Part shown: piece by piece, positions 1-64,000 of the stretch | How positions within the stretch are numbered: position 1 is the first letter of the stretch | How the letters are laid out: every line of letters begins with the position of its first letter | Sequence record: MT708547.1 | DNA: 64,000 nt | Direction: 5' to 3' (one strand) | Program-made: the position numbers and the translations under genes | Notes under the pieces: model-generated | The model's database searches: none | What the model was told of the DNA's origin: nothing | What the model saw: only the letters and a program-made list of their open reading frames with translations

Positions 1-17
1 AGTCCGTTTATAAAGTC

Positions 18-31
18 GCACCCAGTGGGCT
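18..31 (-). repeat. Short-RNA core element (AGCCC-ACT-GGGTGC on - strand) at extreme left end
   Basis: gcacccagtgggct = reverse complement of family core; promoter unclear. Confidence 0.6.
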
Positions 32-149
32 ACATTTGTAACTATTCAGTACTGAATAATTCAATGCATATATTATTTCAGTACTTAATCATTAGCAAAC
101 TATTAATTTCAATATCTCCTTTAGATAATATTTCGTATCTTATATTAAC

Positions 150-208
150 AAAAATCTGAATAGCATGTCAAGAAAAATCTGGATTACCAACGAGAAAAAA
201 TCTGGATT
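150..208. repeat. Three AAAAATCTG(G/A)AT(T) repeats (another at 989-1000)
   Basis: 150-161, 172-185, 194-208; core AATC-TG-GATT is an inverted repeat. Confidence 0.7.
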
Positions 209-270
209 TTAAAAATTTTGAAATGTCGTTTATAGTTCAGGAAAAAAATGAAATTATAACAAGAAAATTG

Positions 271-299
271 TTGACATGGATATGCTGCCATTATATAAT
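271..299 (+). promoter_or_regulatory. Consensus sigma70 promoter
   Basis: TTGACA-17-TATAAT. Confidence 0.9.
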
Positions 300-305
300 G
301 TAATC

Positions 306-720
306 CTCAAGACGAGAGAATGTTCTCTCATAGAAAATGCGAAGAAGCCGAGTTTATCTGTCCCTGCGTGAGTGGGCTAACATTTGAATAGGACAATACG
401 TAGATGAATGAAAAAGGTTTAAAGGGAAGTATTTGATTCCCTGTAGTATAGTTAATGAGTTAGTACTGATATAGTTTAATCATTGAGTACTACTGTCGCA
501 AAGGGAAACCTTTGGCTTCCATGGGGAGTGATGACAGAAGGGCATTATCCTCCATATAGAGTTACTGCGAATAACTCCATAAGTTGGGTTGTGGCAAACC
601 TCCTAAAATAGTGAATCTACAGTACTACTGCTTGGTAGTACTGCTTTTAATTTAAAGAATCCTCTCCGCCAAGAAAGGTGCATGTAACTTGAACATGTGA
701 ACTACGGGAACAGTACTGAA
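306..720 (+). ncRNA. Candidate ~400-nt structured ncRNA
   Basis: Perfect promoter, no ORF, many stems (GAGAGAA/TTCTCTC, GTAGTA/TACTAC, CAAAGG-GAAA-CCTTTG, GAGTTA/TAACTC, CAGTACTAC/GTAGTACTG). Confidence 0.55.
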
Positions 721-791
721 TTATTCAGTACTAATTCCTCCCCAAATTCTGGATACAATGATGCTAGGCTTCAGTTAGTACTGAGTGAGAA

Positions 792-901
792 TGATAATGA
801 TTCTCATTTGAATTGGATGAGAATGATTCTCATTTACTATTGCAAATGATAATAGATTGCATTTACGAATGGTTCTCATTCGCAGATGATAATGATTCTT
901 A
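792..901. promoter_or_regulatory. Cluster of 3 strong + 2 weak Fur-box-like sites
   Basis: TGATAAT-G-ATTCTCA 792-806, TGAGAAT-G-ATTCTCA 818-832, TGATAAT-G-ATTCTTA 887-901; weak 847, 864. Confidence 0.75.
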
Positions 902-929
902 TTTGAAATTGATTTTTCCGATTTTTCCC

Positions 930-995
930 ATTAGCCACCCTTCAGCGTAGGGTTAATTTTTCCCCTGCCGAATCGGTTTTATATTTTCAAAATCT
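930..995 (-). ncRNA. Short-RNA family copy A
   Basis: - strand TTGTTT-17-TATGAT (1030-1002); ACCCT-8nt-AGGGTGG core. Confidence 0.45.
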
Positions 996-1036
996 GGATT
1001 AATCATATCAGTACTAACCAAGATAAACAATACCCC

Positions 1037-1051
1037 TTTACAAATCTTTAC
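1037..1051. promoter_or_regulatory. TTTAC-N5-TTTAC box (CpxR/RstA-like)
   Basis: TTTACAAATCTTTAC = revcomp GTAAA-N5-GTAAA. Confidence 0.6.
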
Positions 1052-1077
1052 AAAAAGATTCTAAATGTGAATACAAA

Positions 1078-1092
1078 TGATAATGATTCTCA
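1078..1092. promoter_or_regulatory. Fur-box-like site
   Basis: TGATAAT-G-ATTCTCA. Confidence 0.75.
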
Positions 1093-1099
1093 TTTACAG

Positions 1100-1149
1100 T
1101 ACTGAATACTTTTTCCCACGCCCTGGCGTCTCCGGTTCCTCCCGTCTAT
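1100..1149 (-). ncRNA. Short-RNA family copy B
   Basis: - strand TTGACT-16-TATAAT (1183-1156); CGG-GAGGAA-CCG stem, divergent core CGCCAGGGCGTGGG. Confidence 0.5.
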
Positions 1150-1251
1150 ATAAACATTATACAGTACTGAATAATTAAGTCAATACTATTTTTGCAAAAA
1201 GATTAAAATAAAATACTTGCAATCCTGGTTAGTACTATATTATAATGTTTA

Positions 1252-1300
1252 CAGTACTGAGAAAGTGCTTTTGCCCGCTAGGGTGCTGGGGAGTATGCGT
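1252..1300 (+). ncRNA. Short-RNA family copy C
   Basis: TTGCAA-18-TATAAT (1217-1246); GCCC-GCTA-GGGTGC-N6-GTAT. Confidence 0.55.
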
Positions 1301-1304
1301 TAAA

Positions 1305-1319
1305 TGATAATGAGAATCA
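1305..1319. promoter_or_regulatory. Fur-box-like site between convergent copies C and D
   Basis: TGATAAT-G-AGAATCA. Confidence 0.65.
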
Positions 1320-1334
1320 TTTACAGTACTGGAC

Positions 1335-1370
1335 GGATTTTCCCACCCTCGGGGGTCTCTTTTTGTCTAT
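1335..1370 (-). ncRNA. Short-RNA family copy D
   Basis: - strand TTGATA-16-TATAAT (1404-1377); CCCC-GA-GGGTGG core. Confidence 0.5.
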
Positions 1371-1409
1371 GTAGTAATTATACAGTACTGAGATACTATA
1401 TCAAGTCTC

Positions 1410-1424
1410 TTTACAAATCTTTAC
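1410..1424. promoter_or_regulatory. TTTAC-N5-TTTAC box
   Basis: exact TTTACAAATCTTTAC. Confidence 0.6.
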
Positions 1425-1522
1425 AAAGCACCCGGGGAGATTTTTCTTTACAATAAAAGTACTTGCATAATTCTTTCAGTACTGACATAATGACTACATC
1501 AACCAATTAGGAGTATTACCAG

Positions 1523-1735
1523 ATGGCTACCATTACGACCCTGTTAAAAAATGCAAAAACTGTATTATTCAGTGATGACGAACATACCAACGTGGATATC
1601 ACTGGAGTTAAAAACCTGTTGGATATCAAAAAGATGTTTTCTATTCATGGCAAACTTACGCGTGTTGGCACGTTCGGAAATAAAGTATGTTACCGCCTTT
1701 CAAGTGATTATAATTTCACACTAACTTTACTGTAA
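1523..1735 (+). CDS. Hypothetical protein, paralog of C-terminal half of 4362-4721
   Basis: SD + promoter; LKNAKTVLFxDDE shared. Confidence 0.85.
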   Translation: MATITTLLKNAKTVLFSDDEHTNVDITGVKNLLDIKKMFSIHGKLTRVGTFGNKVCYRLSSDYNFTLTLL

Positions 1736-1798
1736 AAGTACTTGCATAATTCTTTCAGTACTACTATTATATATTCATACCAAAACAGGAGAACTACT

Positions 1799-1969
1799 AT
1801 GAAATATGCATACTCTTATTTTATTGTAAACGGTGAACGTTTGACCATCGGCCAGGCCGCTGTAAAACATGAAATCATTTGCGATGATCTGGCGAAGATG
1901 CTACCAGGTGAAACGCAAGAGTTTTACAAAGGCTTTCAGAAAGTCGTTGTAACACGTTGCGAAGATTGA
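1799..1969 (+). CDS. Hypothetical protein (56 aa)
   Basis: AGGAG SD before ATG 1799. Confidence 0.75.
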   Translation: MKYAYSYFIVNGERLTIGQAAVKHEIICDDLAKMLPGETQEFYKGFQKVVVTRCED

Positions 1970-2034
1970 TCCAGTACTTGGGGCGGAAACGCCCCTAAAA
2001 CGTCCTGTAACGCATTGTAAGAGGTTTTTATAAT

Positions 2035-2262
2035 ATGGCTATAGAAGTTAACGCTGGGGATATAAAGTCGGCTGTACTGCGTACCCTGAAAGCATACGGC
2101 AGAAAGCTGAATGATCGCAACGTTCCCTATTATTTCCTTGCTGCTACTCATAAAATGGCAATCGCTGAGGCTCGCGGGTGGTTGAATGATCGCAGTACTG
2201 TAAAGAGTACCAGAACAAGAAACGCAATTGAGCGATGGATAAAAGAATTAGAACATTTTTAA
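2035..2262 (+). CDS. Hypothetical protein
   Basis: ORF with GAGG SD, followed by terminator. Confidence 0.7.
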   Translation: MAIEVNAGDIKSAVLRTLKAYGRKLNDRNVPYYFLAATHKMAIAEARGWLNDRSTVKSTRTRNAIERWIKELEHF

Positions 2263-2282
2263 TAATTCAGTACTGAAATTAT

Positions 2283-2306
2283 AAGGGGAGTTAATTAATT
2301 CCCCTT
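2283..2306 (+). terminator. Hairpin terminator
   Basis: AAGGGGAG-TTAATTAA-TTCCCCTT. Confidence 0.55.
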
Positions 2307-2319
2307 TACAAATCTTTAC
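2305..2319. promoter_or_regulatory. TTTAC-N5-TTTAC box 10 nt upstream of -35
   Basis: exact match. Confidence 0.6.
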
Positions 2320-2363
2320 AAAAGAATGGTTGACATAGTATTCCAGTACTGGTATTATGTATT

Positions 2364-2415
2364 CATAGACAGAACAAGTCTTTGGCCCACCGGGTGCGGA
2401 GGAGTATATATTAGA
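2364..2415 (+). ncRNA. Short-RNA family copy E
   Basis: TTGACA-17-TATTAT (2330-2358); GAC-AGAACAA-GTC; GCCC-ACC-GGGTGC-N6-GTAT. Confidence 0.65.
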
Positions 2416-2420
2416 TTGAA

Positions 2421-2441
2421 TGAGAATGATAATGATTCTCA
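2421..2441. promoter_or_regulatory. Extended Fur-box-like site between convergent copies E and F
   Basis: TGAGAATGATAATGATTCTCA. Confidence 0.75.
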
Positions 2442-2451
2442 TTTACTGTAC

Positions 2452-2499
2452 TGAATATATTTCCGCACCCTTTTGGGCTTTTCGATTACTTTCTACTTG
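2452..2499 (-). ncRNA. Short-RNA family copy F
   Basis: - strand TTGCAT-16-TATACT (2533-2506); GCCC-AAAA-GGGTGC. Confidence 0.55.
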
Positions 2500-2538
2500 T
2501 TAATAAGTATACCATAATCAGTACTGAATGCAATGGTC

Positions 2539-2553
2539 TTTACAAATCTTTAC
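2539..2553. promoter_or_regulatory. TTTAC-N5-TTTAC box
   Basis: exact match. Confidence 0.6.
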
Positions 2554-2650
2554 AAAAGAAAATAATTATAAAAAGTACTGAAAAAGTACTTGACGCAATA
2601 ATGTAGTACTGGCATAATACATCCATACCAAACAGAACGGAGTAACTAAA

Positions 2651-2938
2651 ATGTTTAATGAAAATGATCATATTGTTAAAGAGTTTTCTTTCAGTAAGCC
2701 GATCCATTTAGAAAACGGTGAAACGCTGGACAATAAATTTTATGGTAGTATTATTAAGCGTTATACATCGCGGAGTAGTACTGGAATTTTGTGGGAAGTG
2801 AATAAACAGTACAATGGTAATTCGCTGGTTGTCAATGAGTGGGAAAGTTATGCAGTAGCTGAAATGGATTTTTCAAACTTCATTACTGAATCTTTGAACG
2901 ATGATATTTTTTACAAGTTCACGGCGGAAAGGGTTTAA
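2651..2938 (+). CDS. Hypothetical protein
   Basis: cassette promoter + GGAG SD. Confidence 0.85.
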   Translation: MFNENDHIVKEFSFSKPIHLENGETLDNKFYGSIIKRYTSRSSTGILWEVNKQYNGNSLVVNEWESYAVAEMDFSNFITESLNDDIFYKFTAERV

Positions 2939-3054
2939 AAAGTTTTAAAGAGTACTTGACAACATAAACCAGTACTGTATAATGTATTGCATAGAAAGGA
3001 GATTCCAGAATAATGGAATCTCCGATAAAATAAACTAATCAGGAGTTAATTACC

Positions 3055-3666
3055 ATGAACGTTATCGATACCATCTATTCTAAATCTTTCGATGAACTGA
3101 ATGCAGAGCAGAAAGAAAAAGCAATTGATATTATGCGGGATCTGGAACGTCACGATTCAGATCCATTCTGGGCACAATTAATTAATGAAGATAAACGCGA
3201 ATTAATGAATAATGAATATGGTTTTACTGATACTGTAATTCATTATAGCGGCTTTTGCTCACAAGGTGACGGGGCGTCAATTAGTACTGAATCAATCGAC
3301 GCAGAGACGTTTTTACGCAAAATTAAAGCATGGTCGAAATTCCGTGTATTGCATAAACATTTCAATGATGGTACAATTACATTAAAGATCGAACGCAACG
3401 ATCATCGTTATTCTCATGAAAATACTGTTTCTGGTGTGGTGGATCTGGACTACGGCACTGAATTCACTGCTAAAAAGGAAGAGAAAGCGGAAGAACTTGA
3501 AACGCTTTTGACTGAAACTATTCGTGATCTTTCACGCCAGCATTATCAGGTTCTGAGCGATGAAAACGATTATCAAAATAGTGATGAAGCATTGATTGAA
3601 TTGATTAATGCAAATGATTATAATTTCAAAGTGGATAGTACTGGTAACGTATTGGGGTTAGCGTAA
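3055..3666 (+). CDS. Acidic conserved phage protein (YSGFxSQGDGAS ... SDEAxxExIxANxYxF family)
   Basis: motifs recalled from a widespread phage/plasmid family often loosely annotated 'antitoxin'; function unproven. Confidence 0.6.
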   Translation: MNVIDTIYSKSFDELNAEQKEKAIDIMRDLERHDSDPFWAQLINEDKRELMNNEYGFTDTVIHYSGFCSQGDGASISTESIDAETFLRKIKAWSKFRVLHKHFNDGTITLKIERNDHRYSHENTVSGVVDLDYGTEFTAKKEEKAEELETLLTETIRDLSRQHYQVLSDENDYQNSDEALIELINANDYNFKVDSTGNVLGLA

Positions 3667-3960
3667 TGACTAAATTATATATTCGTTTCTGTTTTGCCTG
3701 GTACTTGTATAATCTACAAAATGGTTATACAGTGAAATAATATATATTTTTACTGATATACTGTAAAACGTCCTGTAAACGATTATGGGACGTTTTAAGG
3801 AATATTGGTACAATGTTAGTACTGAATGATTTAAAACGGCTTACAGTGGCTTACAGAGCGTTTAAAAAGTACTTGACGCAATAATGTAGTACTGGCATAA
3901 TTCATCTATACCAAATAGCAAAGGGAATCAGTACTGATTCCAATATAAGGAGTAACCAAA

Positions 3961-4275
3961 ATGAGTACTAAAGAACTGAATGTAACTACCAACACTTATA
4001 AGACGTTATGCGGGCGGTTGTTACGTGATTATTACACGGTCGAAATCGAAGAACGCGAATTACCCGAAGATAAACACTATTGGGAAAGTGGTGTGAGTCC
4101 TCTGTTACGGGTAACAACGTCTAAGCATGTTTTCTTTACTTCCCGTATTCATGTTAATAAGCGTGTTGAATTGACTTTCTCTTTCAGTGGTAGTTATAAA
4201 GATCATGAGATATTAAATGATCATATCGTTATTAGCAAATTTATTCAAATGTACGGGGCGGATTCTTTGCTTTAA
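3961..4275 (+). CDS. Hypothetical protein
   Basis: cassette promoter + SD. Confidence 0.85.
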   Translation: MSTKELNVTTNTYKTLCGRLLRDYYTVEIEERELPEDKHYWESGVSPLLRVTTSKHVFFTSRIHVNKRVELTFSFSGSYKDHEILNDHIVISKFIQMYGADSLL

Positions 4276-4361
4276 GTACTTGACAATGCGATCCAGTACT
4301 GTATAATGTATTACATCAAAGGGGATACATAGGGTATCCCTGATTTAAAGGAGTAGCGACT

Positions 4362-4721: not shown

Positions 4722-4722
4722 T

Positions 4723-4926: not shown

Positions 4927-4949
4927 TTTTTTGTTACTGTATAATAATT

Positions 4950-4974
4950 AGGGGATCAATCGATCCCCTTTTTT
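4950..4974. terminator. Hairpin terminator
   Basis: AGGGGATC-AATC-GATCCCCT-TTTTT. Confidence 0.8.
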
Positions 4975-5043: not shown

Positions 5044-5089
5044 GTAGTTATTATGCCAGTACTGCGAATATAAGTCAATAGGTAGTTTT

Positions 5090-5375: not shown

Positions 5376-5442
5376 TTCAGTACTGAATAATACATAACAT
5401 CTAAATGTTGACAGTACTGAAAAAATGTAGTATAATGATTCA

Positions 5443-5708: not shown

Positions 5709-6209
5709 ATGGCTAAACTGAATTCTGTTGTTGTTGCTCTGATCGCTGGTGATGTTGCTGCTCTGAATGCTTCTTTCGCGTCGGTATCGATGGAAGATAT
5801 GAAAACTGTTCGCAATAACTTTAACGAGTTTTACTCGAAGTTTAAAGCGGCAAATGAAGCGGCGGAAGCGGCTGCAAAAGAGCGTAAAGCACAGATCGAA
5901 ACCGAAACGAAAGCCCTGGTAGATGCCCTGGTAACTGCTGGCCTGGATCTGGAAATGGCCGCCGAAGTCGCCAGCCAGAAAATGGCGGTTAAATATCCCG
6001 AACTGGCCGCGAAGCCGGAAACTGGTAAATCCTGGTCGTTTGAAACGGTATTCGTTAACCTCGACGGCGAAAAACTGGAAATTGGCACTAAAGGCAACAA
6101 AGGCAGCATGAAAGCACTTAAAGCGGCACGCGACGCAATTGCTGCCGGCGAGTACAAAGATCGTGCTGAATGGATCGCCGCACACGCCTGGACTGAAACC
6201 GAAGCGTAA
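5709..6209 (+). CDS. H-NS/MvaT-like nucleoid-associated protein
   Basis: Ala/Glu coiled coil ending ALVTAGLDLE (H-NS MLIADGIDPNE-like); C-term GEKLEIGTKGNK (MvaT GEVIETKGGN-like); high-expression codons. Confidence 0.5.
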   Translation: MAKLNSVVVALIAGDVAALNASFASVSMEDMKTVRNNFNEFYSKFKAANEAAEAAAKERKAQIETETKALVDALVTAGLDLEMAAEVASQKMAVKYPELAAKPETGKSWSFETVFVNLDGEKLEIGTKGNKGSMKALKAARDAIAAGEYKDRAEWIAAHAWTETEA

Positions 6210-6400: not shown

Positions 6401-6826
6401 TCCAATCGGCCTTTGGCGATTTCTTTTTGATTTCCTACGGAAACCAAACGAAACCACCAGCAAAGGCATATCCCTTTATTTGATTTAGTTAGTACTGCGA
6501 TTAATTAGTAATTCATTGCACTACATAGCAATCAATTCCTTTTGTAATAACTCACAGGACGCAATAAGACGCGTTTAAATGACTTCCCTATGTAATGCCA
6601 TTCCTTTTTAATAAGTCCTCTCAAAACGCGTTATAGTGCGTTATACGGCGTTTTTATAATACTCATCATTTCTTTTTCAAAAAGTACTTGCATTAATGAT
6701 CCAGTACTGTAATAATGTACTCACTGAAACGCAGTAAGTGAAGTAAGTAAATGCAAATAAGTACTTGACAAAGTGTTATAGTACTGGCATAATGAATACA
6801 CCAAAACGATTAAGGAGAAACACCAA

Positions 6827-7373: not shown

Positions 7374-7643
7374 ATGAAAGGTATTAGTACTTTAATTGAT
7401 GCAAATACCCGCGTAGCTCGTTCAATGGTTGCTACGTCATTACGTGAATATACTGCAAGCGGGTATTTAGTATTCGCCGTAAATGGCAAATTGCAAGAAC
7501 GTAGAATAGCATTCAGTACTAAAGAGAATTGCCGTTATATTGTATTCAAGAAAGAAGCATACAAGATAGATTTACCAGCTAAACCGATCTCAGGCGGTTA
7601 CAATGTTGAAAGCCTTTATGAAAGGCCACCGTATACTGCGTAG
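7374..7643 (+). CDS. Hypothetical protein
   Basis: GGAG SD. Confidence 0.8.
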   Translation: MKGISTLIDANTRVARSMVATSLREYTASGYLVFAVNGKLQERRIAFSTKENCRYIVFKKEAYKIDLPAKPISGGYNVESLYERPPYTA

Positions 7644-8435: not shown

Positions 8436-8518
8436 AAGTACTTGCTTTAATCATTCAGTACTGTATAATGTATTACATCAAAGGGAATGAATGATTCATT
8501 CCCACATAACCAGGAGTA

Positions 8519-9391: not shown

Positions 9392-9697
9392 ATGATTAAA
9401 AATATTGATGCATTCAATAAAGCATATCTTTATACCAGTACTTTTCGGAATAGCGAAGGAGATCCGGTTGAATTTAAAAATGTAGTACTGATCCGGCCTG
9501 GGTTCGATATTATTCATATCTCGAATACCTGGAATCAAGCTGCGGGCAATCGCTACACTATTGATAAAGAAATTTCAATAGAAGAAGCGTTAAAACTTCC
9601 ATCATTGCCGGATCGCTTATCCCTGGCTAGTCGTGTGGAACTGGTAGGCGATACTGCACAATATATTACGCATGAGTATGAATTTAAGTACCTATAA
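9392..9697 (+). CDS. Hypothetical protein
   Basis: ORF with purine-rich SD. Confidence 0.75.
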   Translation: MIKNIDAFNKAYLYTSTFRNSEGDPVEFKNVVLIRPGFDIIHISNTWNQAAGNRYTIDKEISIEEALKLPSLPDRLSLASRVELVGDTAQYITHEYEFKYL

Positions 9698-10073
9698 GTA
9701 CTTGACAATATAATTCAGTACTGTATAATGTATTACATCAAAGGGGATACATAGTGTATCCCCAATTAACAGGAGTAACCCATATGTCTAGTATCGTTAT
9801 TAATGAAACCTTATTATCTGTTACTTATGATGATGCGAGTATTTTTCCTGGTAATGATTATGGGTATGAAATTCCCGTAAAAGTTGAACTCGATCAAAGT
9901 GTCGGCAATCCCGATGATATTAAACGCACTATGGTGGTTAAAATTGGTGATATCACTTTATTGCCCAGTGATATTGATCATATCAAAAGTATGATTGATC
10001 GTGCAAATAATATCGCTGAAACCTTCAAATAAGTACTTGACAATATAATTCAGTACTGTATAATGTATTACAT
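9694..10073 (+). repeat. 45-bp perfect direct repeats (9694-9738, 10029-10073) flanking one gene
   Basis: ataagtacttgacaatataattcagtactgtataatgtattacat x2. Confidence 0.9.
9784..10032 (+). CDS. Hypothetical protein
   Basis: AGGAG SD. Confidence 0.85.
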   Translation: MSSIVINETLLSVTYDDASIFPGNDYGYEIPVKVELDQSVGNPDDIKRTMVVKIGDITLLPSDIDHIKSMIDRANNIAETFK

Positions 10074-10125
10074 AGAAAAGAGATTCCAGTACTGGAATCT
10101 CTAAGATAACCCAAGGAGATTAAAA

Positions 10126-10339: not shown

Positions 10340-10384
10340 AAAACCAGTACTTGATTTAATTATTGAGTACTGGTATTATATATT

Positions 10385-10437: not shown

Positions 10438-10704
10438 TGAATTGAAGTACAGAAAAATATTTCTTGCATAATTCATTTCTTATGATATAATAGTAATCAC
10501 ATAAATTAATTGGAGTGAACAAAAATGTTATTAGATTGGCTCAATACTTTATCCCCTGCCGCTGGCCGTCGCTGGGCTATCGGTTCGTCGGTTGCCATCG
10601 TTGTAGGCGTCATTGTACTTTTAGTGATGATTTTCTAAAAAGTACTTGCTTTAATGATTCAGTACTGTATAATGTACTTATACCAAATAACAGGAGTAAA
10701 ACCG

Positions 10705-11022
10705 ATGAAAGATGTAACTTTACCAGTAGTTCAAACTAACTTTGAAAACCAATTCCTGGCCGAAGTGTTCAAGATTGATAATGGCGTTGTATCAATCAAT
10801 TACGGTTTCAATAGCGGCGGTTATGAAAAATTCATTTATTTCGTTACTGCCGATGGTGGATGCCTGGCAATTGATACAGTACTGAATGAATTCAGTAAAG
10901 TAGATTTTAATGATGATAATGATCCTCAGTGGTATATCGTCGGCTATGACGTGAACTATGAAGATGAAGATCTTTATGATGATCATACTAATCAAAAAAT
11001 TGAATCTGCTTATGGGGAATAA
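10705..11022 (+). CDS. Acidic conserved phage protein (GGY..YFVTADGGxL..WYIVGYDVNYED..SAY)
   Basis: SD at 10692; acidic C-terminus. Confidence 0.8.
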   Translation: MKDVTLPVVQTNFENQFLAEVFKIDNGVVSINYGFNSGGYEKFIYFVTADGGCLAIDTVLNEFSKVDFNDDNDPQWYIVGYDVNYEDEDLYDDHTNQKIESAYGE

Positions 11023-11567: not shown

Positions 11568-11666
11568 AAAAAGTACTTGCATAATTCTTTCAGTACTGTA
11601 TACTGTACTTATACCAAACAAAAGCAAATGGAATCAGTACTGATTCCCTGTAAAGGAGATAGACCA

Positions 11667-12020: not shown

Positions 12021-12146
12021 GTAGTAATTATATGATAAAGCTGGTGGCTTGTCAACACTTATTTTAAAATAAAAAGTACTGAATAGTACTTGCAAAAAGT
12101 ATTCAGTACTGTATAATGTTTATATTGAGATTAAGGAGTACTGACT

Positions 12147-12737: not shown

Positions 12738-12866
12738 ATGAATAACCGTCAATTGATGATCGATGCATCTCGTTTTCGTTCAAAAGAAGAAAAGAGAAGT
12801 TGCATTAAATGGGTTTTGTCAACTTTCATTATTGGATTACTTATTGTTGCTTTTGTTTATAGTTAG
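12738..12866 (+). CDS. Small membrane protein (42 aa; not in ORF track)
   Basis: AGGAGG SD; C-terminal hydrophobic helix. Confidence 0.65.
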   Translation: MNNRQLMIDASRFRSKEEKRSCIKWVLSTFIIGLLIVAFVYS

Positions 12867-13246
12867 TACTTGACAACTGATTTCAGTACTGTATAATGTT
12901 TATCAAAGGGAATGAATAATTCATTCCCAAATAATCAAAGGAGTTTTGCCATGATCTATATTATCAAAGTATCCCCGACTGTAGGCAAATCAGAAGTTGT
13001 AGCCGTCATCACTTCCCTGGAAGCGAAAGATCTTCATACGCCGTTTAATGTATGGGTGGAGGATAATTTCGGCCAATTCAGTACTGCTGAATATATCGAA
13101 CAATTCGCCGTACCGGATACTGGTAAAATCAAAGTGGATCGTATCCTGGATTTTGATAACAGTAATTATTTTTAAAAGTACTTGACAACTGATTTCAGTA
13201 CTGTATAATGTTTATCAAAGGGAATGAATAATTCATTCCCAAATAA
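12865..13246 (+). repeat. 70-bp perfect direct repeats (12865-12934, 13177-13246) flanking one gene
   Basis: identical promoter+hairpin cassette. Confidence 0.9.
12951..13175 (+). CDS. Hypothetical protein
   Basis: AAGGAG SD. Confidence 0.85.
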   Translation: MIYIIKVSPTVGKSEVVAVITSLEAKDLHTPFNVWVEDNFGQFSTAEYIEQFAVPDTGKIKVDRILDFDNSNYF

Positions 13247-14218: not shown

Positions 14219-14485
14219 ATGGCCTATCATACACCACATAGACATTTCATTGATAAACGCGGTATGGCTTTTAAAGCAATGAGTGACAATCGTAACACAC
14301 AAATGTACTTTAAAGATATGACGTTAGAAGAAGCTATTGAAGCTGTAAGGAATGATCGTAAGCTTTCCAAGAAAGTTGCATCAGTACTTAATGCTTTTTG
14401 GTTTGAACGTACTACCAACAAAGAATACAAAGAAAAGATGATTGCACTTGGTAAAGTAGTACGAGAAGAAAAATTATATCTTTAA
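14219..14485 (+). CDS. Hypothetical basic protein
   Basis: AGGAGG SD. Confidence 0.85.
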   Translation: MAYHTPHRHFIDKRGMAFKAMSDNRNTQMYFKDMTLEEAIEAVRNDRKLSKKVASVLNAFWFERTTNKEYKEKMIALGKVVREEKLYL

Positions 14486-14580
14486 GTACTTGACTATGTG
14501 ATTCAGTACTGTATACTGTACTTATACCAAACAAAAGTAAAGGGAATCAGTACTGATTCCCTGTAAAGGAGATAGACCAA

Positions 14581-14768: not shown

Positions 14769-15044
14769 ATGCGGATTAAACTTACTAATGATGAGATTCA
14801 TTCAGTACTTACTACCAATATGCAGGACTGGAAAAAGTACGCTGATATCGAAGAAGTCCAGGAACTCAATGATGATTTGAGTGTAGATGAAATTATCACT
14901 ATTTGCTCATCTCAATTCTTTGATGATATCAATGATGAAGAGCAAGATGTATTTGATATCATGGAAAAACATTTTATTGCGTATGATGTTTTCCCGTATA
15001 CTCGCCAGGCTTATATTCTTATTCACAACATTTATAACAAATAA
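14769..15044 (+). CDS. Small acidic protein
   Basis: 20 D/E vs 7 K/R in 91 aa. Confidence 0.85.
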   Translation: MRIKLTNDEIHSVLTTNMQDWKKYADIEEVQELNDDLSVDEIITICSSQFFDDINDEEQDVFDIMEKHFIAYDVFPYTRQAYILIHNIYNK

Positions 15045-15422: not shown

Positions 15423-15485
15423 AAAGTACTTGACACCTAATATCAGTACTGACATAATTACTTTAAACAAACAAGGTATTACAAA

Positions 15486-15957: not shown

Positions 15958-16314
15958 ATGATTACTAAATTCTACGCTACTCGTGAACTGGCTCGGAACG
16001 TCGCTCGTGAAGAAGGTGAAACCTTCAAAGATATGGGTAAAGATTCCCCTGCTGGTCAACGCTGGGCAGTACTGTTCCGCGAGGTCAAAGACCTGGTAGA
16101 AAACGCTAAAGCCGTTGAAATGAACGTTCCCACCAAAGAAGATAAAGAACTGACTGATGCCCTCGCCGCTGCATTCTCCGCGATGGATAAAGCCGCAGCG
16201 GTAGTACTGAAAGTACCGGAATTTGTTACCAGAAAAGTGCATTCAGTACTACAAAATAAATTCAATGGTAAACAGGTTCAAGTGTTTACTAAACGTAAAA
16301 TTCCGGTCATGTAA
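15958..16314 (+). CDS. Hypothetical protein
   Basis: cassette + SD; followed by terminator. Confidence 0.85.
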   Translation: MITKFYATRELARNVAREEGETFKDMGKDSPAGQRWAVLFREVKDLVENAKAVEMNVPTKEDKELTDALAAAFSAMDKAAAVVLKVPEFVTRKVHSVLQNKFNGKQVQVFTKRKIPVM

Positions 16315-16337
16315 AATCTGACTATTACAGTACTAAC

Positions 16338-16360
16338 AAAGGGGCTTCAATGCCCCTTTA
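16338..16360. terminator. Hairpin terminator
   Basis: AAAGGGGC-TTCAAT-GCCCCTTT. Confidence 0.75.
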
Positions 16361-16422
16361 AACGTCCTGTAAGCCATTCTAAGAGGTTTTACATGAAAAA
16401 GGTACAATTACACAAAGGAGTA

Positions 16423-16641
16423 ATGAAAGTTCATTATAATGCCCCGCAACGCATTATAGATAGATCCATTGAACTAGCCAATCAATACCTAGCTGGTGGA
16501 TTAACTCCCAGGAAGTTAAGCAACGGGAAGTTATATGTAATCAACGTTGATACTAATAATCGTATAGTAATCAAAGGTGAAAGCATATCACTGTATGAAC
16601 ATCAACAGTATAACAAGAAAGTAAAAAATATTAGTAGATAA
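16423..16641 (+). CDS. Possible ParE/RelE-like small toxin-fold protein
   Basis: ..Y..G...PRKL....Y.INV...RIV......L.EH..YN pattern; AAAGGAG SD. Confidence 0.35.
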   Translation: MKVHYNAPQRIIDRSIELANQYLAGGLTPRKLSNGKLYVINVDTNNRIVIKGESISLYEHQQYNKKVKNISR

Positions 16642-18815: not shown

Positions 18816-18961
18816 TAATGATTTGAAGTACTGAAAAATAATTATAAAAAGTACTTGTATTTGTGATTCAGTACTGCCATAATATATCCATACAAGGGAA
18901 ACACATTGTTTCCCGATAATCCACAGCAATAGTGCTGGTGGATGAACCAGGAGTAATAACC

Positions 18962-19258: not shown

Positions 19259-19353
19259 TTTATAAAAAGTACTTGCTTTAATAGTTCAGTACTGTATACT
19301 GTTTATCAAGGGGAAGCATAGGGCTTTCCCGTTACACTCAAAGGAGATACACC

Positions 19354-19752
19354 ATGTTTACTATCACTTCTCGCCAGGATGTTCTGTACGTTGCTAAAAC
19401 TTTTGGTCTGGAAGCACTCGATCATATCATTCGCAACAGTACAATGAATGCTGATGCAAATGGGATTATCATTGATACTCGGGCATGGGCCGCCAATGAA
19501 GTCATTGCCATCGAGCATGTTAACGATGGTAACAATGTCTATGAAGTGGATGCATGTTTCAATGCTGTTAATGTAGCAGGTATGTATATCACTGGCATTG
19601 ATGATATTACTATCATCCGTTCGGGTATGGGTAACTTCTCCATGCCTTTACGTTCAGCAATGGAAAGTAAAGAGATCAGTACAGAACAATGTGCAAATTT
19701 AATCAATGAGATTACCGCACGTAATGAAGCTGCTGCTATCCTTTACCCGTAG
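19354..19752 (+). CDS. Hypothetical protein
   Basis: cassette + SD. Confidence 0.85.
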   Translation: MFTITSRQDVLYVAKTFGLEALDHIIRNSTMNADANGIIIDTRAWAANEVIAIEHVNDGNNVYEVDACFNAVNVAGMYITGIDDITIIRSGMGNFSMPLRSAMESKEISTEQCANLINEITARNEAAAILYP

Positions 19753-19805: not shown

Positions 19806-20054
19806 TATGGGTAATATGATTGGGTAGGTTATGGTATAAGTACTGTCAGAATTGATTACAGGAGGATAACAGAAAAATTGATTAATTGATTTCAGTACTG
19901 AACTGTCATTGAGAAAAAATATTAGTCAAAAAATAATTGACTTAGAAAATAATTAAACCAATACCTTATACTGTATGAAATAGTTTCGGACTGTTATTAT
20001 ATATTTGACTAAGTAAAGTGGTATTAGGCTTAGCACTTTTATATAGTATTACAG

Positions 20055-20145
20055 TACTGAATACTTATATCATTCTGTGCACTATTCTGTACACTATTCT
20101 GTACTGAATACTTATATCATTCTGTACACTATTCTGTACTACACT
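20055..20145. repeat. Compound tandem repeat
   Basis: TACTGAATACTTATATCATTCTGT x2 interleaved with (G/A)CACTATTCTGT x3. Confidence 0.85.
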
Positions 20146-20171
20146 AATTGAAATTCATGGATATAAAACCC

Positions 20172-56068: not shown

Positions 56069-56587
56069 ATGGAAGAAGAAAAGAAAGATAAACATGCCGT
56101 ACATTTTACAGGTGGTCATGATATATGGACTACTCCACTTGATTTTTTTAAGAAATTAGATGATGTTTGGCATTTTACATTAGATAGTGCTTGTGTAAAA
56201 GAAACTGCGTTATGCTCTAAGTACTATACACCAGAAACTGATGGTTTATCTCAGGATTGGGGGAACGAAATTGTATGGTGTAATTGTCCTTACAGTGATA
56301 TAAAAACTTGGTTATCTAAGTGTGCAGATGCGTATAAAAAAGGTGCTACCGTACTGATATTAGTTCCTGCTCGTACCGAGACTATTGCATTTCAAAATTA
56401 TGCTATGCCAATTGCTGATTGTATTACCTTTATTAAAGGTAGATTAAAATTTGGTGATCCTGCTAATCCAGAACGTAAAACAACTAGTGCACCGTTCCCA
56501 TCATGTCTAATAGTACTGGATAAGAATCTAACACAAGCGAAAATAGATTGCCTAAAATCATTAGGAAACACTATGGTTAACATATGA
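56069..56587 (+). CDS. Phage DNA N6-adenine methyltransferase (Dam/T1-type family)
   Basis: WTTP..FF..L..F.LD.A..Y..DGL.QDW..WCNCPYS..LVPART..F..GRLKF..APFPS. Confidence 0.85.
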   Translation: MEEEKKDKHAVHFTGGHDIWTTPLDFFKKLDDVWHFTLDSACVKETALCSKYYTPETDGLSQDWGNEIVWCNCPYSDIKTWLSKCADAYKKGATVLILVPARTETIAFQNYAMPIADCITFIKGRLKFGDPANPERKTTSAPFPSCLIVLDKNLTQAKIDCLKSLGNTMVNI

Positions 56588-60329: not shown

Positions 60330-60532
60330 AAATAGTTTTAGAATTTGCATTTATTATTTTTGGTTTCATTTGGTTCACTGCTATTTCAATTTTTGCTGGA
60401 TATCTCATTATTAAACCGGATATGTTGATTTTCTACTGGATTTTGACTTTAATTGCATTCATCAGTGTTGTCTATTTGTCTTATAAACTGGTATATCTAT
60501 ATGCAGATGAAATCAAAAAATATAACACTTAG
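60326..60532 (+). CDS. Small two-TM membrane protein
   Basis: two hydrophobic segments. Confidence 0.75.
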   Translation: MKIVLEFAFIIFGFIWFTAISIFAGYLIIKPDMLIFYWILTLIAFISVVYLSYKLVYLYADEIKKYNT

Positions 60533-60639
60533 TTGGTTTTATGTTGAAAAGATTTAAAATCGATATTGAATAAACATTTCTCCTTGTGATATAATACTAT
60601 ATGTAAAAGGATTTTACATAAGCACAAGGAGAGTCAAAG

Positions 60640-61368
60640 ATGATAGATAATTTAGCATTTGCATCCGAAATGGCTAATCAGTTGAACATGAGTAATTTTC
60701 AGAGTCTTACACCAGTGATGGCGGAATATGCTGTTGCTCATGCCACCTGTGGTGAACAAGTTGGATCAGCAAATTTATTAGCTGATGTATTCAGTACTGT
60801 ACAAAGTACCCAATACAGTGTTAAAATGTATAGGGATAAGTTTGTACAGTTGTATATGCTTGATGTAATAAAAGAAGAACCAGAATGGACTGATTTTATT
60901 ATTGAACGTAGGATTAGTGGTGTTTCTAATCCAGATAAAGATGCAGTACAAGTATTTGATGAAATACTTCAAGATGTATATAGTAATGAACAAAAAAGTC
61001 TAAATCAATACAATGTACGTTCTACCAAGACAGTGCTCGTGGGATTTGATGAAGATGAAGAATATTACTATTTTCGTTGTACTGAAGTAGATTTTAAATA
61101 CGAAACCCCCAGTACAGTTAAAGTTAAAGAATTTACTGAAAAGAGTAAAAACTTCAAAAAACATTCTTCTAATATTAGTAATATAGTTGGTTATAATAAA
61201 GATGGTATTGACATATATCAATGGGTACACCCAAATAACTCAACTTATACCAGATGTTTAAAGAAACGTTATAATTTAAAACAAGAAGAATCATTTTATT
61301 TTAAGATAAAGAAGCATTCCTATCAACGACCTGATGAATCAGTGTTACTTGGTATGATTTACTTCTGA
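60640..61368 (+). CDS. Hypothetical protein
   Basis: own promoter + AGGAG SD. Confidence 0.85.
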   Translation: MIDNLAFASEMANQLNMSNFQSLTPVMAEYAVAHATCGEQVGSANLLADVFSTVQSTQYSVKMYRDKFVQLYMLDVIKEEPEWTDFIIERRISGVSNPDKDAVQVFDEILQDVYSNEQKSLNQYNVRSTKTVLVGFDEDEEYYYFRCTEVDFKYETPSTVKVKEFTEKSKNFKKHSSNISNIVGYNKDGIDIYQWVHPNNSTYTRCLKKRYNLKQEESFYFKIKKHSYQRPDESVLLGMIYF

Positions 61369-61376
61369 TTTTAGTC

Positions 61377-61408
61377 GTCCAGTACAATATAAGTACTGGA
61401 CATTTTTT
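61377..61408 (+). terminator. Terminator
   Basis: GTCCAGTAC-AATATAA-GTACTGGAC-ATTTTTT. Confidence 0.7.
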
Positions 61409-61420
61409 TAAGGTAAAAAA

Positions 61421-61699
61421 ATGAATATATTACAAAAAGTTAATCTATTTGGAAAAGCGTATACAAATGCTTTTTATGGTATTGATAAACGTTATGAATA
61501 TGCTAATTTTTTAAATAGGGAAATTGAATTTAGTGGAATGAATAGGTTATTGTCTGGTAAACGAGTAACTATTATTTTTAATGGTTATCAGGGATATATT
61601 AATCAAATTCGTCATCTAGATAAGAAAATTTTTGCATACGTTTATACTAATAATGGAAATTTATTGATTAATTTATCTTTTTTGGAATTGATTGAATGA
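61421..61699 (+). CDS. Hypothetical protein (paralog of 61696, 62010)
   Basis: M..L.KV.L..KAY/KVF N-terminus. Confidence 0.75.
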   Translation: MNILQKVNLFGKAYTNAFYGIDKRYEYANFLNREIEFSGMNRLLSGKRVTIIFNGYQGYINQIRHLDKKIFAYVYTNNGNLLINLSFLELIE

Positions 61700-61980
61700 A
61701 ATTAATAGACCAAGTTATTCTTTATAAGAAAGTATTTGATTATATGGAAGATTTTCTTGATGGTACACATTATGAATGTTGCATTTATGTTACATGGAAA
61801 AAGAATGTAATGGAAATAGAAAAAGCTACCATTTCTAAAATAGTGCGTATAAAAAGCCTTGATACTATTGGTACTATTATTGAACTTAATATAGGAAGAT
61901 ATTTTGCATTTTTTGGTGTAAAAGTACCTGAAAACGATTTTGCTCTTATAATTTCATTAGATGATATTGAGTTTCTTTGA
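61696..61980 (+). CDS. Hypothetical protein
   Basis: coupled ORF. Confidence 0.75.
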   Translation: MKLIDQVILYKKVFDYMEDFLDGTHYECCIYVTWKKNVMEIEKATISKIVRIKSLDTIGTIIELNIGRYFAFFGVKVPENDFALIISLDDIEFL

Positions 61981-62009
61981 GTTTTATCTATTTGGTAATA
62001 TAAAATATT

Positions 62010-62321
62010 ATGGATAAATTACACAAAGCAGTATTATTTTTAAAAGCATATAGCTATGAGTACTTACAAAGTCATGGAAAATGGAATGGTAGTTATAAGG
62101 ATTTATATTCATCTGTTTTTCTTAATGAAGTAAATCTTGTGATATCAGAAGTACAAAAATTATATGAAAGAAAACTTGTGCATACGAGATTTGGTATTGG
62201 AATTATTATTAGTATATTTTGCTTCACATACGGTTCCTTTTTAGTCGCAATAGAAACAATAGTAGAAGGCAAACCACAAACAATAGTATTAAAATTAAGT
62301 GAGATATATCTGGATGAATGA
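62010..62321 (+). CDS. Hypothetical protein
   Basis: ORF track. Confidence 0.75.
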   Translation: MDKLHKAVLFLKAYSYEYLQSHGKWNGSYKDLYSSVFLNEVNLVISEVQKLYERKLVHTRFGIGIIISIFCFTYGSFLVAIETIVEGKPQTIVLKLSEIYLDE

Positions 62322-62586
62322 ACATTTTAATAGAATACAATTAATCACCCAACTTCTACAAATGGTTGATGACACATTTGATGAATTAAAAAATAATCTT
62401 ATGAATAAGAAAATCAAATGTAAGGTATATATGAATGATGGTGATTATTTCGATATGCGTGAAGTTGAAGTAACTGGAATTGTTACTAATATTACTTTGT
62501 ATGAATATGATCTAACTATTACAGTGAAAATCGACGAAGGTCGTGAATATTACGTTTGTAATCAACATATTGAGGTGGTTGAATGA
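62299..62586 (+). CDS. Hypothetical protein
   Basis: ORF track. Confidence 0.7.
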   Translation: MRYIWMNEHFNRIQLITQLLQMVDDTFDELKNNLMNKKIKCKVYMNDGDYFDMREVEVTGIVTNITLYEYDLTITVKIDEGREYYVCNQHIEVVE

Positions 62587-63728
62587 GTTTAGTAGAAATC
62601 TATAATGATTTAATGAATTTAGTACAAAATAATGAAGCATTTGAATATAAAGATCAGCGTTCAATTGGCGGTGGTTTGTATAGAATCTTTTCTTATCGAA
62701 TGGCCTCATATACTGATTTCTGTGAACCTAATGCCAAAGAAACACGAGGATCAATGTGGGAAATCAATGAAGATGGCACTATGATTCGTTGTGCGGCACG
62801 TACTATGAATAAATTTTTTAACGCATATGAAAACCCATTCACAATGTTTGATAAAAATATGCTTAGTACTGAAATTGAAGTGGCGATGGATAAACGAGAC
62901 GGTTCTATTATCAGTACTTTCAAGGATAATGACGGAATTATTCGTTGTAAATCTCACACTTCTCTATCTTCAGAACACGCAATTAATAGTAATGCTATCA
63001 TGCGTCCTGGTTCTAGTTTATATCAATACGTAGAAGAAGCTGAACTTCAACAATATACCGTGAACCTCGAATATACTTCACCTGAATATCGTATTGTATT
63101 GCCATATCAGAGCGAGAAACTGACTGTATTGAACGTTCGTCATCGAATCACTGGTGAACTACTGTGTGGTGAAAAACTGCGTCAGAAGTTTCCTATGCTC
63201 GCTATGCGTAGCACTAATATGATAAATGGTCAGAACATTGCAAGTAATTTTCCAATGCGTACTACAGTACTTGAAACTGTGGAAGCAGTAAAAGGAATGC
63301 GAGACATTGAAGGATTTGTAGCAGTACTGAAAGATGGCACAATGTTTAAAATTAAAACAGATTGGTACTGTGCTTTGCATTTCAATAAGGATAGTATTAA
63401 TGTTGATTCTAGACTTTACGAATCAGTGCTACAAGGTGCAAGTGATGATTTAAGGCAAATGTTCTCTAATGATCAGTATTGTCTTGATAAGATTAAAAGG
63501 ATGGAAGATTTAGTATTCAGTACTTATAATTCTTTTGAAAAATTTGTTAATGATTTTTACAATGAATTTAAACATTTAGAACGCAAAGAATATGCACTAA
63601 AAGTACAGAAACTTCTACCAAAAGAATTAAATCATCAGGGTTATGCTTTCTCTTTGTATAACAATAAACCGTTTGATTTAAAGGAAAACATGATCAAATA
63701 CAGCAAAGAAGTATTAAAAGATTTCTAA
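62583..63728 (+). CDS. rnlA: RNA ligase 1 (T4 RnlA-like)
   Basis: RIFSYR, RG, KFFN, motif I KRDGS, NLEY, EGFV, FKIKTDWY. Confidence 0.9.
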   Translation: MSLVEIYNDLMNLVQNNEAFEYKDQRSIGGGLYRIFSYRMASYTDFCEPNAKETRGSMWEINEDGTMIRCAARTMNKFFNAYENPFTMFDKNMLSTEIEVAMDKRDGSIISTFKDNDGIIRCKSHTSLSSEHAINSNAIMRPGSSLYQYVEEAELQQYTVNLEYTSPEYRIVLPYQSEKLTVLNVRHRITGELLCGEKLRQKFPMLAMRSTNMINGQNIASNFPMRTTVLETVEAVKGMRDIEGFVAVLKDGTMFKIKTDWYCALHFNKDSINVDSRLYESVLQGASDDLRQMFSNDQYCLDKIKRMEDLVFSTYNSFEKFVNDFYNEFKHLERKEYALKVQKLLPKELNHQGYAFSLYNNKPFDLKENMIKYSKEVLKDF

Positions 63729-63740
63729 TAAGGACACCAA

Positions 63741-63914
63741 ATGAAGAAAAGGAATTCGTGGAGTACTCCTGAAGAATATAGGAAGATTCAGTGTTATTTT
63801 GATACAATACACAAAGAAAAATCCAGTTCAGGAGTACGAAAAAACAGAAATAAAATTAATACTAAAAAGAAAGAACGTATATATTCTTTAGAACGCCATA
63901 CAAGAGAAGCTTAA
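63741..63914 (+). CDS. Small basic protein (57 aa; not in ORF track)
   Basis: AAGGA SD. Confidence 0.55.
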   Translation: MKKRNSWSTPEEYRKIQCYFDTIHKEKSSSGVRKNRNKINTKKKERIYSLERHTREA

Positions 63915-64000
63915 ACGGGAGATTATTATGAAAGTACAAATTCAGCACAGTATTGTTCAAGACATGTCAGTGGTTAAATTTAACAATCTTCATGATTTTT

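Follow-up and report, generated by a model that had tools for sequence, protein, structure and literature searches.

We analysed bases 1 to 64,000 (the window) of Klebsiella phage Muenster (MT708547; 346,937 bp), a RaK2-like jumbo myovirus of the genus Alcyoneusvirus, with respect to the palindrome AGTACT, which an earlier note on the same sequence had taken for a genome-wide cis-signal. All but one of the 157 genes of the window are on the + strand. The window begins with a long terminal repeat (TR), which corresponds to "zone 1" of the earlier note and which, by analogy to T5 and SPO1, is expected to enter the cell first with its pre-early genes. We found 272 copies of AGTACT. Their density was 7.9/kb in the TR (13.8/kb in its intergenic and 4.2/kb in its coding parts; 97 intergenic, 55 coding, and 5 edge sites) and 2.6/kb in the remaining 44 kb, compared with an expectation of 0.22/kb; AGTACT was about 3.5-fold denser in the TR than elsewhere.

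Dinucleotide-preserving shuffles of the window contained 14.9 ± 3.3 copies (maximum 25) and an order-1 Markov model predicted 14.1, so that the earlier estimate of more than 100 copies for about 20 expected was, if anything, too modest. AGTACT ranked first of the 4096 hexamers (z of about 69), followed by its own overlapping extensions CAGTAC and GTACTG, and CAGTACTG was present 82 times (0.5 expected). An order-3 Markov model still predicted merely 110 copies. An order-4 model reached 251 only because AGTAC and GTACT have, as pentamers, an enrichment of about 8-fold of their own, which moves the signal into the model. Among the 64 palindromic hexamers, AGTACT alone was clearly enriched in the window. 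CTTAAG (0 for 14.7 expected), ACATGT (9 for 31), and ACTAGT (3 for 14) were depleted, and so were the palindromic tetramers GCGC (0 for 25) and CTAG (35 for 118), which bears out the remark that enrichment is the unusual direction for a palindrome. This scarcity of other palindromes agrees with an avoidance of restriction, and against it the excess of AGTACT is all the more conspicuous. CTGCAG, CAGCTG, GCATGC, and TGGCCA were among many GC-rich hexamers absent from the window. AGTACT thus shows one property of the highly iterated palindrome (HIP) class, that of a short palindrome exceeding its expectation by at least an order of magnitude.

Open reading frames (ORFs) contained 167 of the 272 sites, which encoded Ser-Thr (84 sites), x-Val-Leu (55), or x-Tyr-x (26) depending on the frame. 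When synonymous codons were shuffled within genes, 37.4 ± 5.7 sites (maximum 53) were obtained outside the TR, compared with 112 observed, and 15.9 ± 3.0 in the TR, compared with 55. This control is conservative, because codon usage itself is skewed by AGTACT. The outcome that the earlier note had set against its own proposal, a loss of the enrichment outside promoters upon codon or Markov correction, was thus not observed. AGTACT has also shaped protein sequences, dipeptide usage being distorted: Ser-Thr was found 129 times for 57 expected, Val-Leu 108 times for 61, and Gln-Tyr 58 times for 30, and the reverse dipeptide Thr-Ser was depleted (38). Presence in all reading frames and between ORFs, beyond what codon usage explains, is another property that AGTACT shares with the HIP class. 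In phage RaK2, the stretch from 158000 to 188000 encodes a tRNA set that includes Ser(GCU), the reader of the over-used AGT codon; ARAGORN found eight tRNAs there, compared with five annotated.

The flanks of the sites were informative about the level at which AGTACT is read. Taken in one direction of transcription, the coding sites outside the TR preferred T, T, and C at −3, −2, and −1 (60, 57, and 48 of 112) and G, A, and A at +6, +7, and +8 (47, 52, and 67 of 112). These flanks are reverse-complement symmetric and give the extended consensus TTCAGTACTGAA. As a signal in single-stranded RNA or in a peptide would not need symmetric flanks, this argues that AGTACT is read on duplex DNA by a two-fold symmetric, dimeric reader. 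Recognition is strict: one-mismatch variants were present at 0.6- to 3.8-fold of expectation, with higher values at the outer positions (NGTACN, 2.0–3.8) than at the inner ones (0.6–1.9). Outside the TR, the sites were scattered in a near-Poisson manner (coefficient of variation of the gaps 0.98), with no preferred position in genes. Pairs less than 50 bp apart were rarer than expected (49 vs 74) and no pair was closer than about 9–10 bp (0 vs about 6 expected), as would be the case if each site had a footprint.

We then compared other phages of the group. In the unannotated genome OU509535, which is 97% identical to Muenster, AGTACT was present 944 times for 80 expected; each 10-kb bin was enriched about 10-fold, and the TR about 35-fold. 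The proposed genome-wide cis-signal is borne out, as one selected at the DNA level. Genome-wide the enrichment was 12- to 19-fold, and the density was unchanged in structural-gene regions distant from early promoters. AGTACT was the top hexamer in all enterobacterial RaK2-like genera tested: in the Escherichia coli phage fEgEco12 (Asteriusvirus; 138 vs 6.0 in the TR and 66 vs 7.8 in the next 29 kb), the Klebsiella aerogenes phage fENko-Kae01 (Munch-like; 144 vs 9.0), the Pectobacterium phage CBB (Mimasvirus; 85 vs 5.7 in a non-TR stretch), and the Yersinia phage fHe-Yen9-04 (Eneladusvirus; 47 vs 4.9 in a stretch with the tail sheath and tube genes). It was also the top word in each of five IMG/VR contigs (79–142 copies vs 4–7 expected). 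The enrichment therefore recurs in five genera and is lineage-wide. No enrichment was found in the distant relatives PA5oct (0 vs 6.1), XacN1 (0 vs 4.1), and Atu_ph07 (2 vs 2.5), which are phages of Pseudomonas, Xanthomonas, and Agrobacterium and contained no alternative iterated palindrome, nor in a T4-like control (3 vs 7.9). A 50-kb sample of E. coli K-12 contained 0.22 AGTACT/kb.

In the TR, 21 pairs of sites were exactly 20 bp apart and belonged to near-identical σ70-type promoters, 60–180 bp 5' of + strand genes (Table 1), with the consensus aaaAGTACTTGACA-N9-tcAGTACTG(T/g/a)(A/c)TAAT. The final T of the upstream copy is at the same time part of the −35 hexamer, and 1 or 2 bp separate the end of the downstream copy from the −10 hexamer. 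The 20-bp pairs reported in the earlier note were real, with two of its three examples displaced by 1 bp (the true starts are 9697/9717, 1458/1478, and 2951/2971). The further copies that it placed 10–11 bp upstream were found for 2 of the 21 pairs (2574 and 12075) and not for the remainder. The statement that the motif supplies the TG of an extended −10 applied to about a third of the paired promoters. A canonical TGn of this origin characterizes the AGTACTGnYATAAT class (about a third to half of the promoters), whereas in the AGTACTGTATAAT class TG directly abuts the −10 hexamer (TATAAT) and the spacer is 16 bp. A simple promoter scan of the Muenster TR returned 35 promoter-like sites, and 21 of these had AGTACT at −7 or −8 from the start of the −10 hexamer. 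The same offsets were found for 16 of 29 such sites in fEgEco12, 9 of 34 in fENko-Kae01, and also in IMG/VR loci, and the copy fused to the −35 hexamer (offset −5) was present in Muenster, fENko-Kae01, and Munch-like contigs. Many TR promoters with a single site had a one-off copy (AGTATTGAC) at −35. AGTACT is thus built into the pre-early promoters at fixed positions, as had been noticed, with offsets that recur across genera. By overlapping the −35 and −10 elements in this way, it occupies the position of an operator for a promoter-occluding repressor. The helical phasing described in the earlier note was significant in the Muenster TR, where spacings followed a period of about 10.5 bp even after the 20-bp pairs were removed (R = 0.40 vs a null 95% value of 0.28), among promoters related by descent. 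As a general property it had been overstated, since phasing was marginal in fEgEco12, absent in fENko-Kae01, and not found in Muenster outside the TR.

Table 1. AGTACT-related and neighbouring features of the Muenster window
Feature	Positions	Strand	Remarks
Array of 272 AGTACT sites	1–64000		extended consensus TTCAGTACTGAA; 157 in 1–20,030, 115 in 20,031–64,000
Terminal repeat (TR), pre-early zone	1–20030	+	record annotation, PhageTerm prediction
Gene-free left end	1–1303	.	14 AGTACT sites, including 16-bp palindrome TATTCAGTACTGAATA at 43–58
Dual-site σ70 promoter	1458–1491	+	AGTACT fused to −35, second copy 20 bp later abutting −10
Dual-site σ70 promoter	1737–1770	+
Triple-site promoter	2574–2618	+	copies at 2574, 2585, 2605
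Dual-site σ70 promoter	2951–2984	+
Dual-site σ70 promoter	3868–3901	+
18-bp perfect palindrome GGAATCAGTACTGATTCC	3924–3941	+	5' untranslated region, 31 nt 5' of start codon
Dual-site σ70 promoter	4275–4308	+
H-NS/StpA-like protein	5709–6209	+	TR-encoded; candidate chromosome-binding protein
Dual-site σ70 promoter	6683–6716	+
Dual-site σ70 promoter	6760–6793	+
Dual-site σ70 promoter	8437–8470	+
Dual-site σ70 promoter	9697–9730	+	example of the earlier note
Dual-site σ70 promoter	10032–10065	+
Dual-site σ70 promoter	10346–10379	+
Dual-site σ70 promoter	10641–10674	+
Dual-site σ70 promoter	11572–11605	+
Triple-site promoter	12075–12118	+	copies at 12075, 12085, 12105
Dual-site σ70 promoter	12865–12898	+
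Dual-site σ70 promoter	13177–13210	+
Dual-site σ70 promoter	14485–14518	+
Dual-site σ70 promoter	15425–15458	+
ParE-like toxin-domain protein	16393–16641		Pfam PF24732, E = 3e-9
Triple-site promoter	18827–18883	+	copies at 18827, 18850, 18870
Dual-site σ70 promoter	19268–19301	+
Non-repeat early region	20031–64000	+	112 of 115 sites within ORFs, three frames, 2.7/kb, near-random scatter
Dam-family (PF05869) adenine methyltransferase	56069–56587	+	considered as possible writer

Palindromes similar to the one at 3924–3941 were centred on the AGTACT sites at 10088, 11636, 14184, and 14549. These five perfect palindromes (18–24 bp), which lie 31–38 nt ahead of start codons, would form hairpins in 5' untranslated regions (UTRs), and further TR sites adjoin terminators. 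Together with the occurrence of the motif in most TR promoters, the hairpins would be accounted for by a signal at the RNA level or restricted to promoters, AGUACU serving as an RNase, processing, or structural element of the mRNA, or AGTACT being part of the early-promoter consensus. As a complete explanation this is already largely refuted, and we regard it as very improbable, in view of the majority of sites lying within ORFs in all frames, of the symmetric flanks that single-stranded RNA does not need, and of the equal density in structural-gene regions far from early promoters. Most TR promoters are also followed by a GC-rich hairpin (GGGGATAC...GTATCCCC or GGGAATGAATAATTCATTCCC) about 30–40 nt 5' of the start codon (for example at 4318–4345, 9740–9765, and 12905–12930); these hairpins may be RNA stabilizers, processing sites, or attenuators.

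Further evidence for selection came from the conservation of individual sites. Between Muenster and its 97%-identical relative, divergence was 2.4% within AGTACT sites and 3.5% elsewhere, and 244 of 266 sites were intact, compared with 226 expected. Across genera, in orthologues sharing about 46% amino acid identity, 16 of 58 sites (28%) were found at the same codon position, compared with 7.2% for arbitrary hexamers (p = 2e-6), that is, a positional conservation about four-fold over background. Conservation between genomes beyond background is a third property in common with HIP-class palindromes. At the non-shared sites the encoded amino acids differed in 36 of 42 cases, which indicates that there is both retention and turnover and that turnover involves amino acid change.

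The tail-fibre and tail-spike (depolymerase) cluster of RaK2 (322000–345809), whose annotation lists similarities to K11, K1E, K5, and K1-5 proteins, was particular in that AGTACT was found almost solely in the N-terminal parts of the genes and was missing from the C-terminal parts (no copy in ORF525 and one each in ORFs 526, 527, and 529). The N-terminal parts are presumably conserved anchor domains, and the C-terminal parts are what we take to be horizontally exchanged receptor-binding domains. The motif-free C-terminal parts thus suggest that foreign DNA arrives without AGTACT and that gaps of several kilobases are tolerated. AGTACT density can serve as a marker to tell native from horizontally acquired DNA in these genomes.

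The same distribution, with the motif in lineage-native anchor domains and not in acquired ones, would also be produced if AGTACT were a functionless by-product of sequence-biased repair or gene conversion that turns near-matches into AGTACT, as in Elhai's model for HIP1, its density then reflecting residence time. The near-Poisson scatter outside the TR, with no preferred position within genes, and the HIP1-like bias of variants towards the outer bases agree with such a process. It would, however, have to override protein sequence, given the amino acid differences at 36 of the 42 non-shared sites and the doubling of Ser-Thr, and the promoter offsets fixed across genera as well as the higher density in the TR point to position-specific use. 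We give this explanation a slim chance. Very-short-patch repair of the Vsr type was rejected: a six-frame translation of the 97%-identical relative contained no Vsr-like endonuclease, and the deamination-type neighbour AGTATT/AATACT was present at 1.4-fold of expectation and hence not depleted.

The restriction of AGTACT to phages of Klebsiella, Escherichia, Pectobacterium, and Yersinia, with the identical motif in all and none in the relatives infecting Pseudomonas, Xanthomonas, and Agrobacterium, would be explained simply if an invariant host protein conserved in Enterobacterales read the motif and was exploited by the phage. The non-enterobacterial relatives are also phylogenetically distant, however, so that host range and lineage are confounded, and a repressor present at injection would block the promoters that the phage needs first. 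The named candidate was the nucleoid occlusion protein SlmA: as phage DNA replicates, its sites would number in the thousands and would activate or titrate SlmA, with a block of cell division as the result. SlmA sites (GTGAGTACTCAC) have the identical central hexamer, are palindromic and dispersed along the chromosome, and match the phage consensus at T2/A11 as well. SlmA itself requires a palindrome of 12 bp in which positions 1, 2, 4, and 5 are G, T, A, and G and position 3 is a purine (GTRAGYRCTYAC); E. coli has about 50 such sites, none of them in promoters. By contrast, the phage has about 950 sites, many of them in promoters, and does not select G1 or the purine at 3, preferring T/A and C at these positions. 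G was present at −3 in 33 of 272 sites (12%), which is below background, C was present at −1 in 133 of 272, and the window contained a single full match to GTRAGYRCTYAC. A SlmA decoy was therefore rejected, as the core matches and the flanks fail, and no SlmA/TetR-like phage ORF was found in the six-frame translation of the relative. All in all, we consider a host reader quite improbable.

The earlier note had left the choice between a DNA-binding protein and a methylation mark. In the latter case, AGTACT or its GTAC core would be the target of a phage modification, and selection would be driven by a reader of the modified or hemimodified state, like GATC methylated by Dam and read by SeqA and MutH. 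At promoters, paired sites on one helical face would allow replication-coupled sequestration. Strict specificity for a palindromic hexamer is typical of type II methyltransferases, and site pairs separated by some two turns of the helix are similar to the targets that SeqA prefers. The Dam/GATC system is likewise a dense chromosome-wide palindrome with same-face pairs at regulated promoters that allow sequestration; it differs in that GATC is not enriched in its host and that AGTACT has no evident enzyme. The outer-base bias of the variants is also that of HIP1, whose cognate methyltransferases recognize the inner core, and methylation of RaK2 DNA, with resistance to many restriction enzymes, has been reported.

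The two recognizable methyltransferases of these phages did not fit AGTACT. The Dam-family protein encoded at 56069–56587 is conserved in other genera (46–71% identity), and its nearest relatives outside jumbo phages are enzymes of lactococcal 936 phages (49% identity). One of these small NPPY-only Dam enzymes, M.Phi93DAM, has been shown to methylate GATC by SMRT (single-molecule real-time) sequencing, DpnI/DpnII digestion, and cloning. With the nearest characterized relative methylating GATC, the Muenster enzyme probably targets GATC and is probably not AGTACT-specific, and it was rejected as the writer. RaK2 ORF194 (in the 158000–188000 stretch) is a C5 cytosine methyltransferase, to which, among solved structures, the catalytic domains of eukaryotic DNMT3A and DNMT3B are closest. 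This fits the reports of CpG methylation and of Dam-, Dcm-, and CpG-type restriction resistance for RaK2. ORF194 was also rejected, being a DNMT3-like, CpG-type enzyme, and AGTACT contains no CpG. A scan of ORFs of at least 90 amino acids for motif IV of a third methyltransferase (N6/N4 or C5) gave three chance matches without Pfam support. A restriction–modification target of the ScaI type was discarded too, as there was no candidate methyltransferase or endonuclease gene among the ORFs scanned and the site is enriched, not avoided. Methylation is therefore the disfavoured side of the choice, and we consider an epigenetic mark rather unlikely; no binding or shut-off protein was found in silico on the other side.

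Among the TR proteins, the one encoded at 5709–6209 could act against xenogeneic silencing or serve the phage as a nucleoid protein. It matched the H-NS N-terminal domain of Pfam (E = 1e-5) and, in the depositor's HHpred search, StpA, and had homologues in Asteriusvirus and in one Munch-like contig (three genera in all). The AlphaFold model displayed long N-terminal helices, a linker, and a C-terminal domain made of a β-hairpin plus helices. Its C-terminal part resembles the H-NS DNA-binding domain, with (T/R/S)-G-N replacing the QGR loop. PHROGs and Pfam searches with ten conserved TR proteins assigned no function.

Other known readers of related sequences were also considered. CAGTA and TACTG are LexA half-sites and a LexA box needs N10 spacing; LexA was discarded because the 20-bp pairs give CTG-N12-CAG. 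Operators of Phd/YefM-type antitoxins have a GTAC core. The gene at 15958–16314, located 5' of the ParE-like toxin gene, belongs to no detectable family, and an antitoxin of this type was therefore not retained as the reader. Homologues of the toxin-like gene are present in both fEgEco12 and fENko-Kae01, and fEgEco12 also has one of the gene upstream of it. The stretch 15958–16641 looks like a toxin–antitoxin-like pair among the pre-early genes.

Several other elements were observed in and next to the TR. Several of the best-conserved TR proteins (10705–11022, 14769–15044, and 19354–19752) are very acidic (isoelectric points of 4.1–4.4; for example, 21 Asp plus Glu in 105 amino acids) and are candidates for mimicking DNA or for inhibiting DNA-binding proteins of the host. 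Repeats that resemble Fur boxes (GATAATGATTCTCATTT and variants, with 3–5 mismatches to GATAATGATAATCATTATC) are clustered in the gene-free left end of the TR, at 787–906, 1073–1097, 1306–1324, and 2422–2446, and the first 2.5 kb contain 9 of the 30 near-matches of the window; this cluster could titrate or respond to host Fur. A short repeat, (A)AAAATCTGGATT, is found about four times in the gene-free left end (150–215 and 985–1000), where it possibly forms another protein-binding array. To the right of the TR boundary, at 20040–20150, there are tandem direct repeats of CACTATTCTGTAC, as well as CTGAATACTTATATCATTCTGT twice; these repeats contain near-copies of AGTACT (CTGTACT and TGTACA).

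The AGTACT signal is thus real, strict, at the level of duplex DNA, selected, lineage-specific, and integrated into pre-early promoters at conserved offsets. We infer both that a protein reads it and that promoters are repressed as a result. Tentatively, and giving it somewhat less than an even chance, we favour the reading of AGTACT as the target of a symmetric DNA-binding factor with sequence specificity, which would be spread over the phage chromosome and would compete with RNA polymerase at the TR promoters. On this reading, the enterobacterial RaK2-like jumbo phages possess in AGTACT (extended form TTCAGTACTGAA) a highly iterated palindrome whose density is maintained by selection on double-stranded DNA. 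Its reader, a two-fold-symmetric and strictly sequence-specific factor that is probably encoded by the phage and possibly a conserved host protein, would meet a site about every 400 bp along the entire phage chromosome, which is 10 times as dense as in the host DNA sampled. By occupying these sites it would mark, organize, or protect phage DNA. In the TR, the site is built into some 20–30 strong σ70 promoters, with copies at −10 and often at −35, two helical turns apart. There, occupancy would compete with RNA polymerase, so that pre-early transcription would be gated or shut off once the factor accumulates.

A number of observations weigh against this proposal. Our in silico search yielded no reader of AGTACT and no shut-off protein. 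The full-length model of the H-NS-like protein gave no significant Foldseek match, and proteins of the H-NS family normally recognize the minor groove of AT-rich DNA rather than hexamers that contain GC. The sole small basic TR protein conserved in three genera (7374–7643) had a low-confidence model (pLDDT 56), and the six-frame translation of the 97%-identical relative contained no SlmA/TetR-, HU-, or Vsr-like ORF. Strict six-base specificity is more typical of restriction–modification enzymes than of transcription factors. Early shut-off in T4 and T7 involves modification of RNA polymerase rather than repressors, and Muenster encodes a kinase and an ADP-ribosyltransferase. Finally, the fixed placement in promoters could partly reflect duplication of a promoter cassette.

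Comparison with known systems situates the finding. The closest analogue is HIP1 (GCGATCGC) of cyanobacteria, which is 15- to 300-fold over-represented within and between ORFs, is conserved between genomes beyond background, has single-base variants biased to the outer positions, and is suspected to serve in chromosome organization. AGTACT resembles it in all of the sequence features, including the outer bias of the variants. It differs in being a hexamer, AT-rich, and viral, in its location in σ70 promoters at fixed offsets, and in its higher density in the TR. Nor was a cognate orphan methyltransferase found for AGTACT among the ORFs of at least 90 amino acids, the recognizable enzymes being of the Dam-family GATC type and the DNMT3-like C5 type.

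The stoperators of mycobacteriophage L5 and the sites of SPO1 TF1 are similar to AGTACT in having many genome-wide copies that overlap early promoters, and early host-takeover genes located in a long terminal repeat and transcribed by the host RNA polymerase are a further resemblance. L5 stoperators are asymmetric, orientation-dependent, intergenic, and about 30 in number; TF1 is an HU homologue that depends on hydroxymethyluracil DNA and prefers sites located within the terminal redundancy, in its early promoters. In contrast to both, most AGTACT sites are inside genes, and the lack of an HU-like ORF in the relative's six-frame translation led us to discard an HU/TF1-like reader.

We found no prior report of iterated AGTACT in the literature searched. 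It is not mentioned in the papers that describe RaK2, fEgEco12, fENko-Kae01, or CBB (the last with its tables of promoters and terminators), and nothing pertinent came out of full-text searches in which AGTACT or CAGTACTG was combined with phage terms, in a coverage that excludes the GAP32 paper, which may discuss promoters. The excess of a palindrome runs counter to the usual palindrome avoidance by phages. Conservation across at least five genera, at the price of hundreds of altered codons, means that AGTACT must serve, or result from, a strong process. It is possible, and in our view doubtful, that the approximately 950 copies constitute a chromosome-wide "self" code, by which a dedicated factor tells the 350-kb viral chromosome from host DNA, organizes it, or protects it and, by means of the copies in TR promoters, times the pre-early programme. 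If true, HIP1, DNA-uptake sequences, or Chi would have a viral counterpart here, and one of such strength that it has reshaped the proteome. Therapeutic use of phages of this group against Klebsiella and E. coli is under development, and the 12-bp consensus, used as a bait, offers a concrete handle for finding a new DNA-binding or DNA-modifying activity. The finding also provides a testable model of how phages with long terminal repeats shut off their early genes, and a viral system in which the question of HIP1, now 30 years old, becomes tractable.

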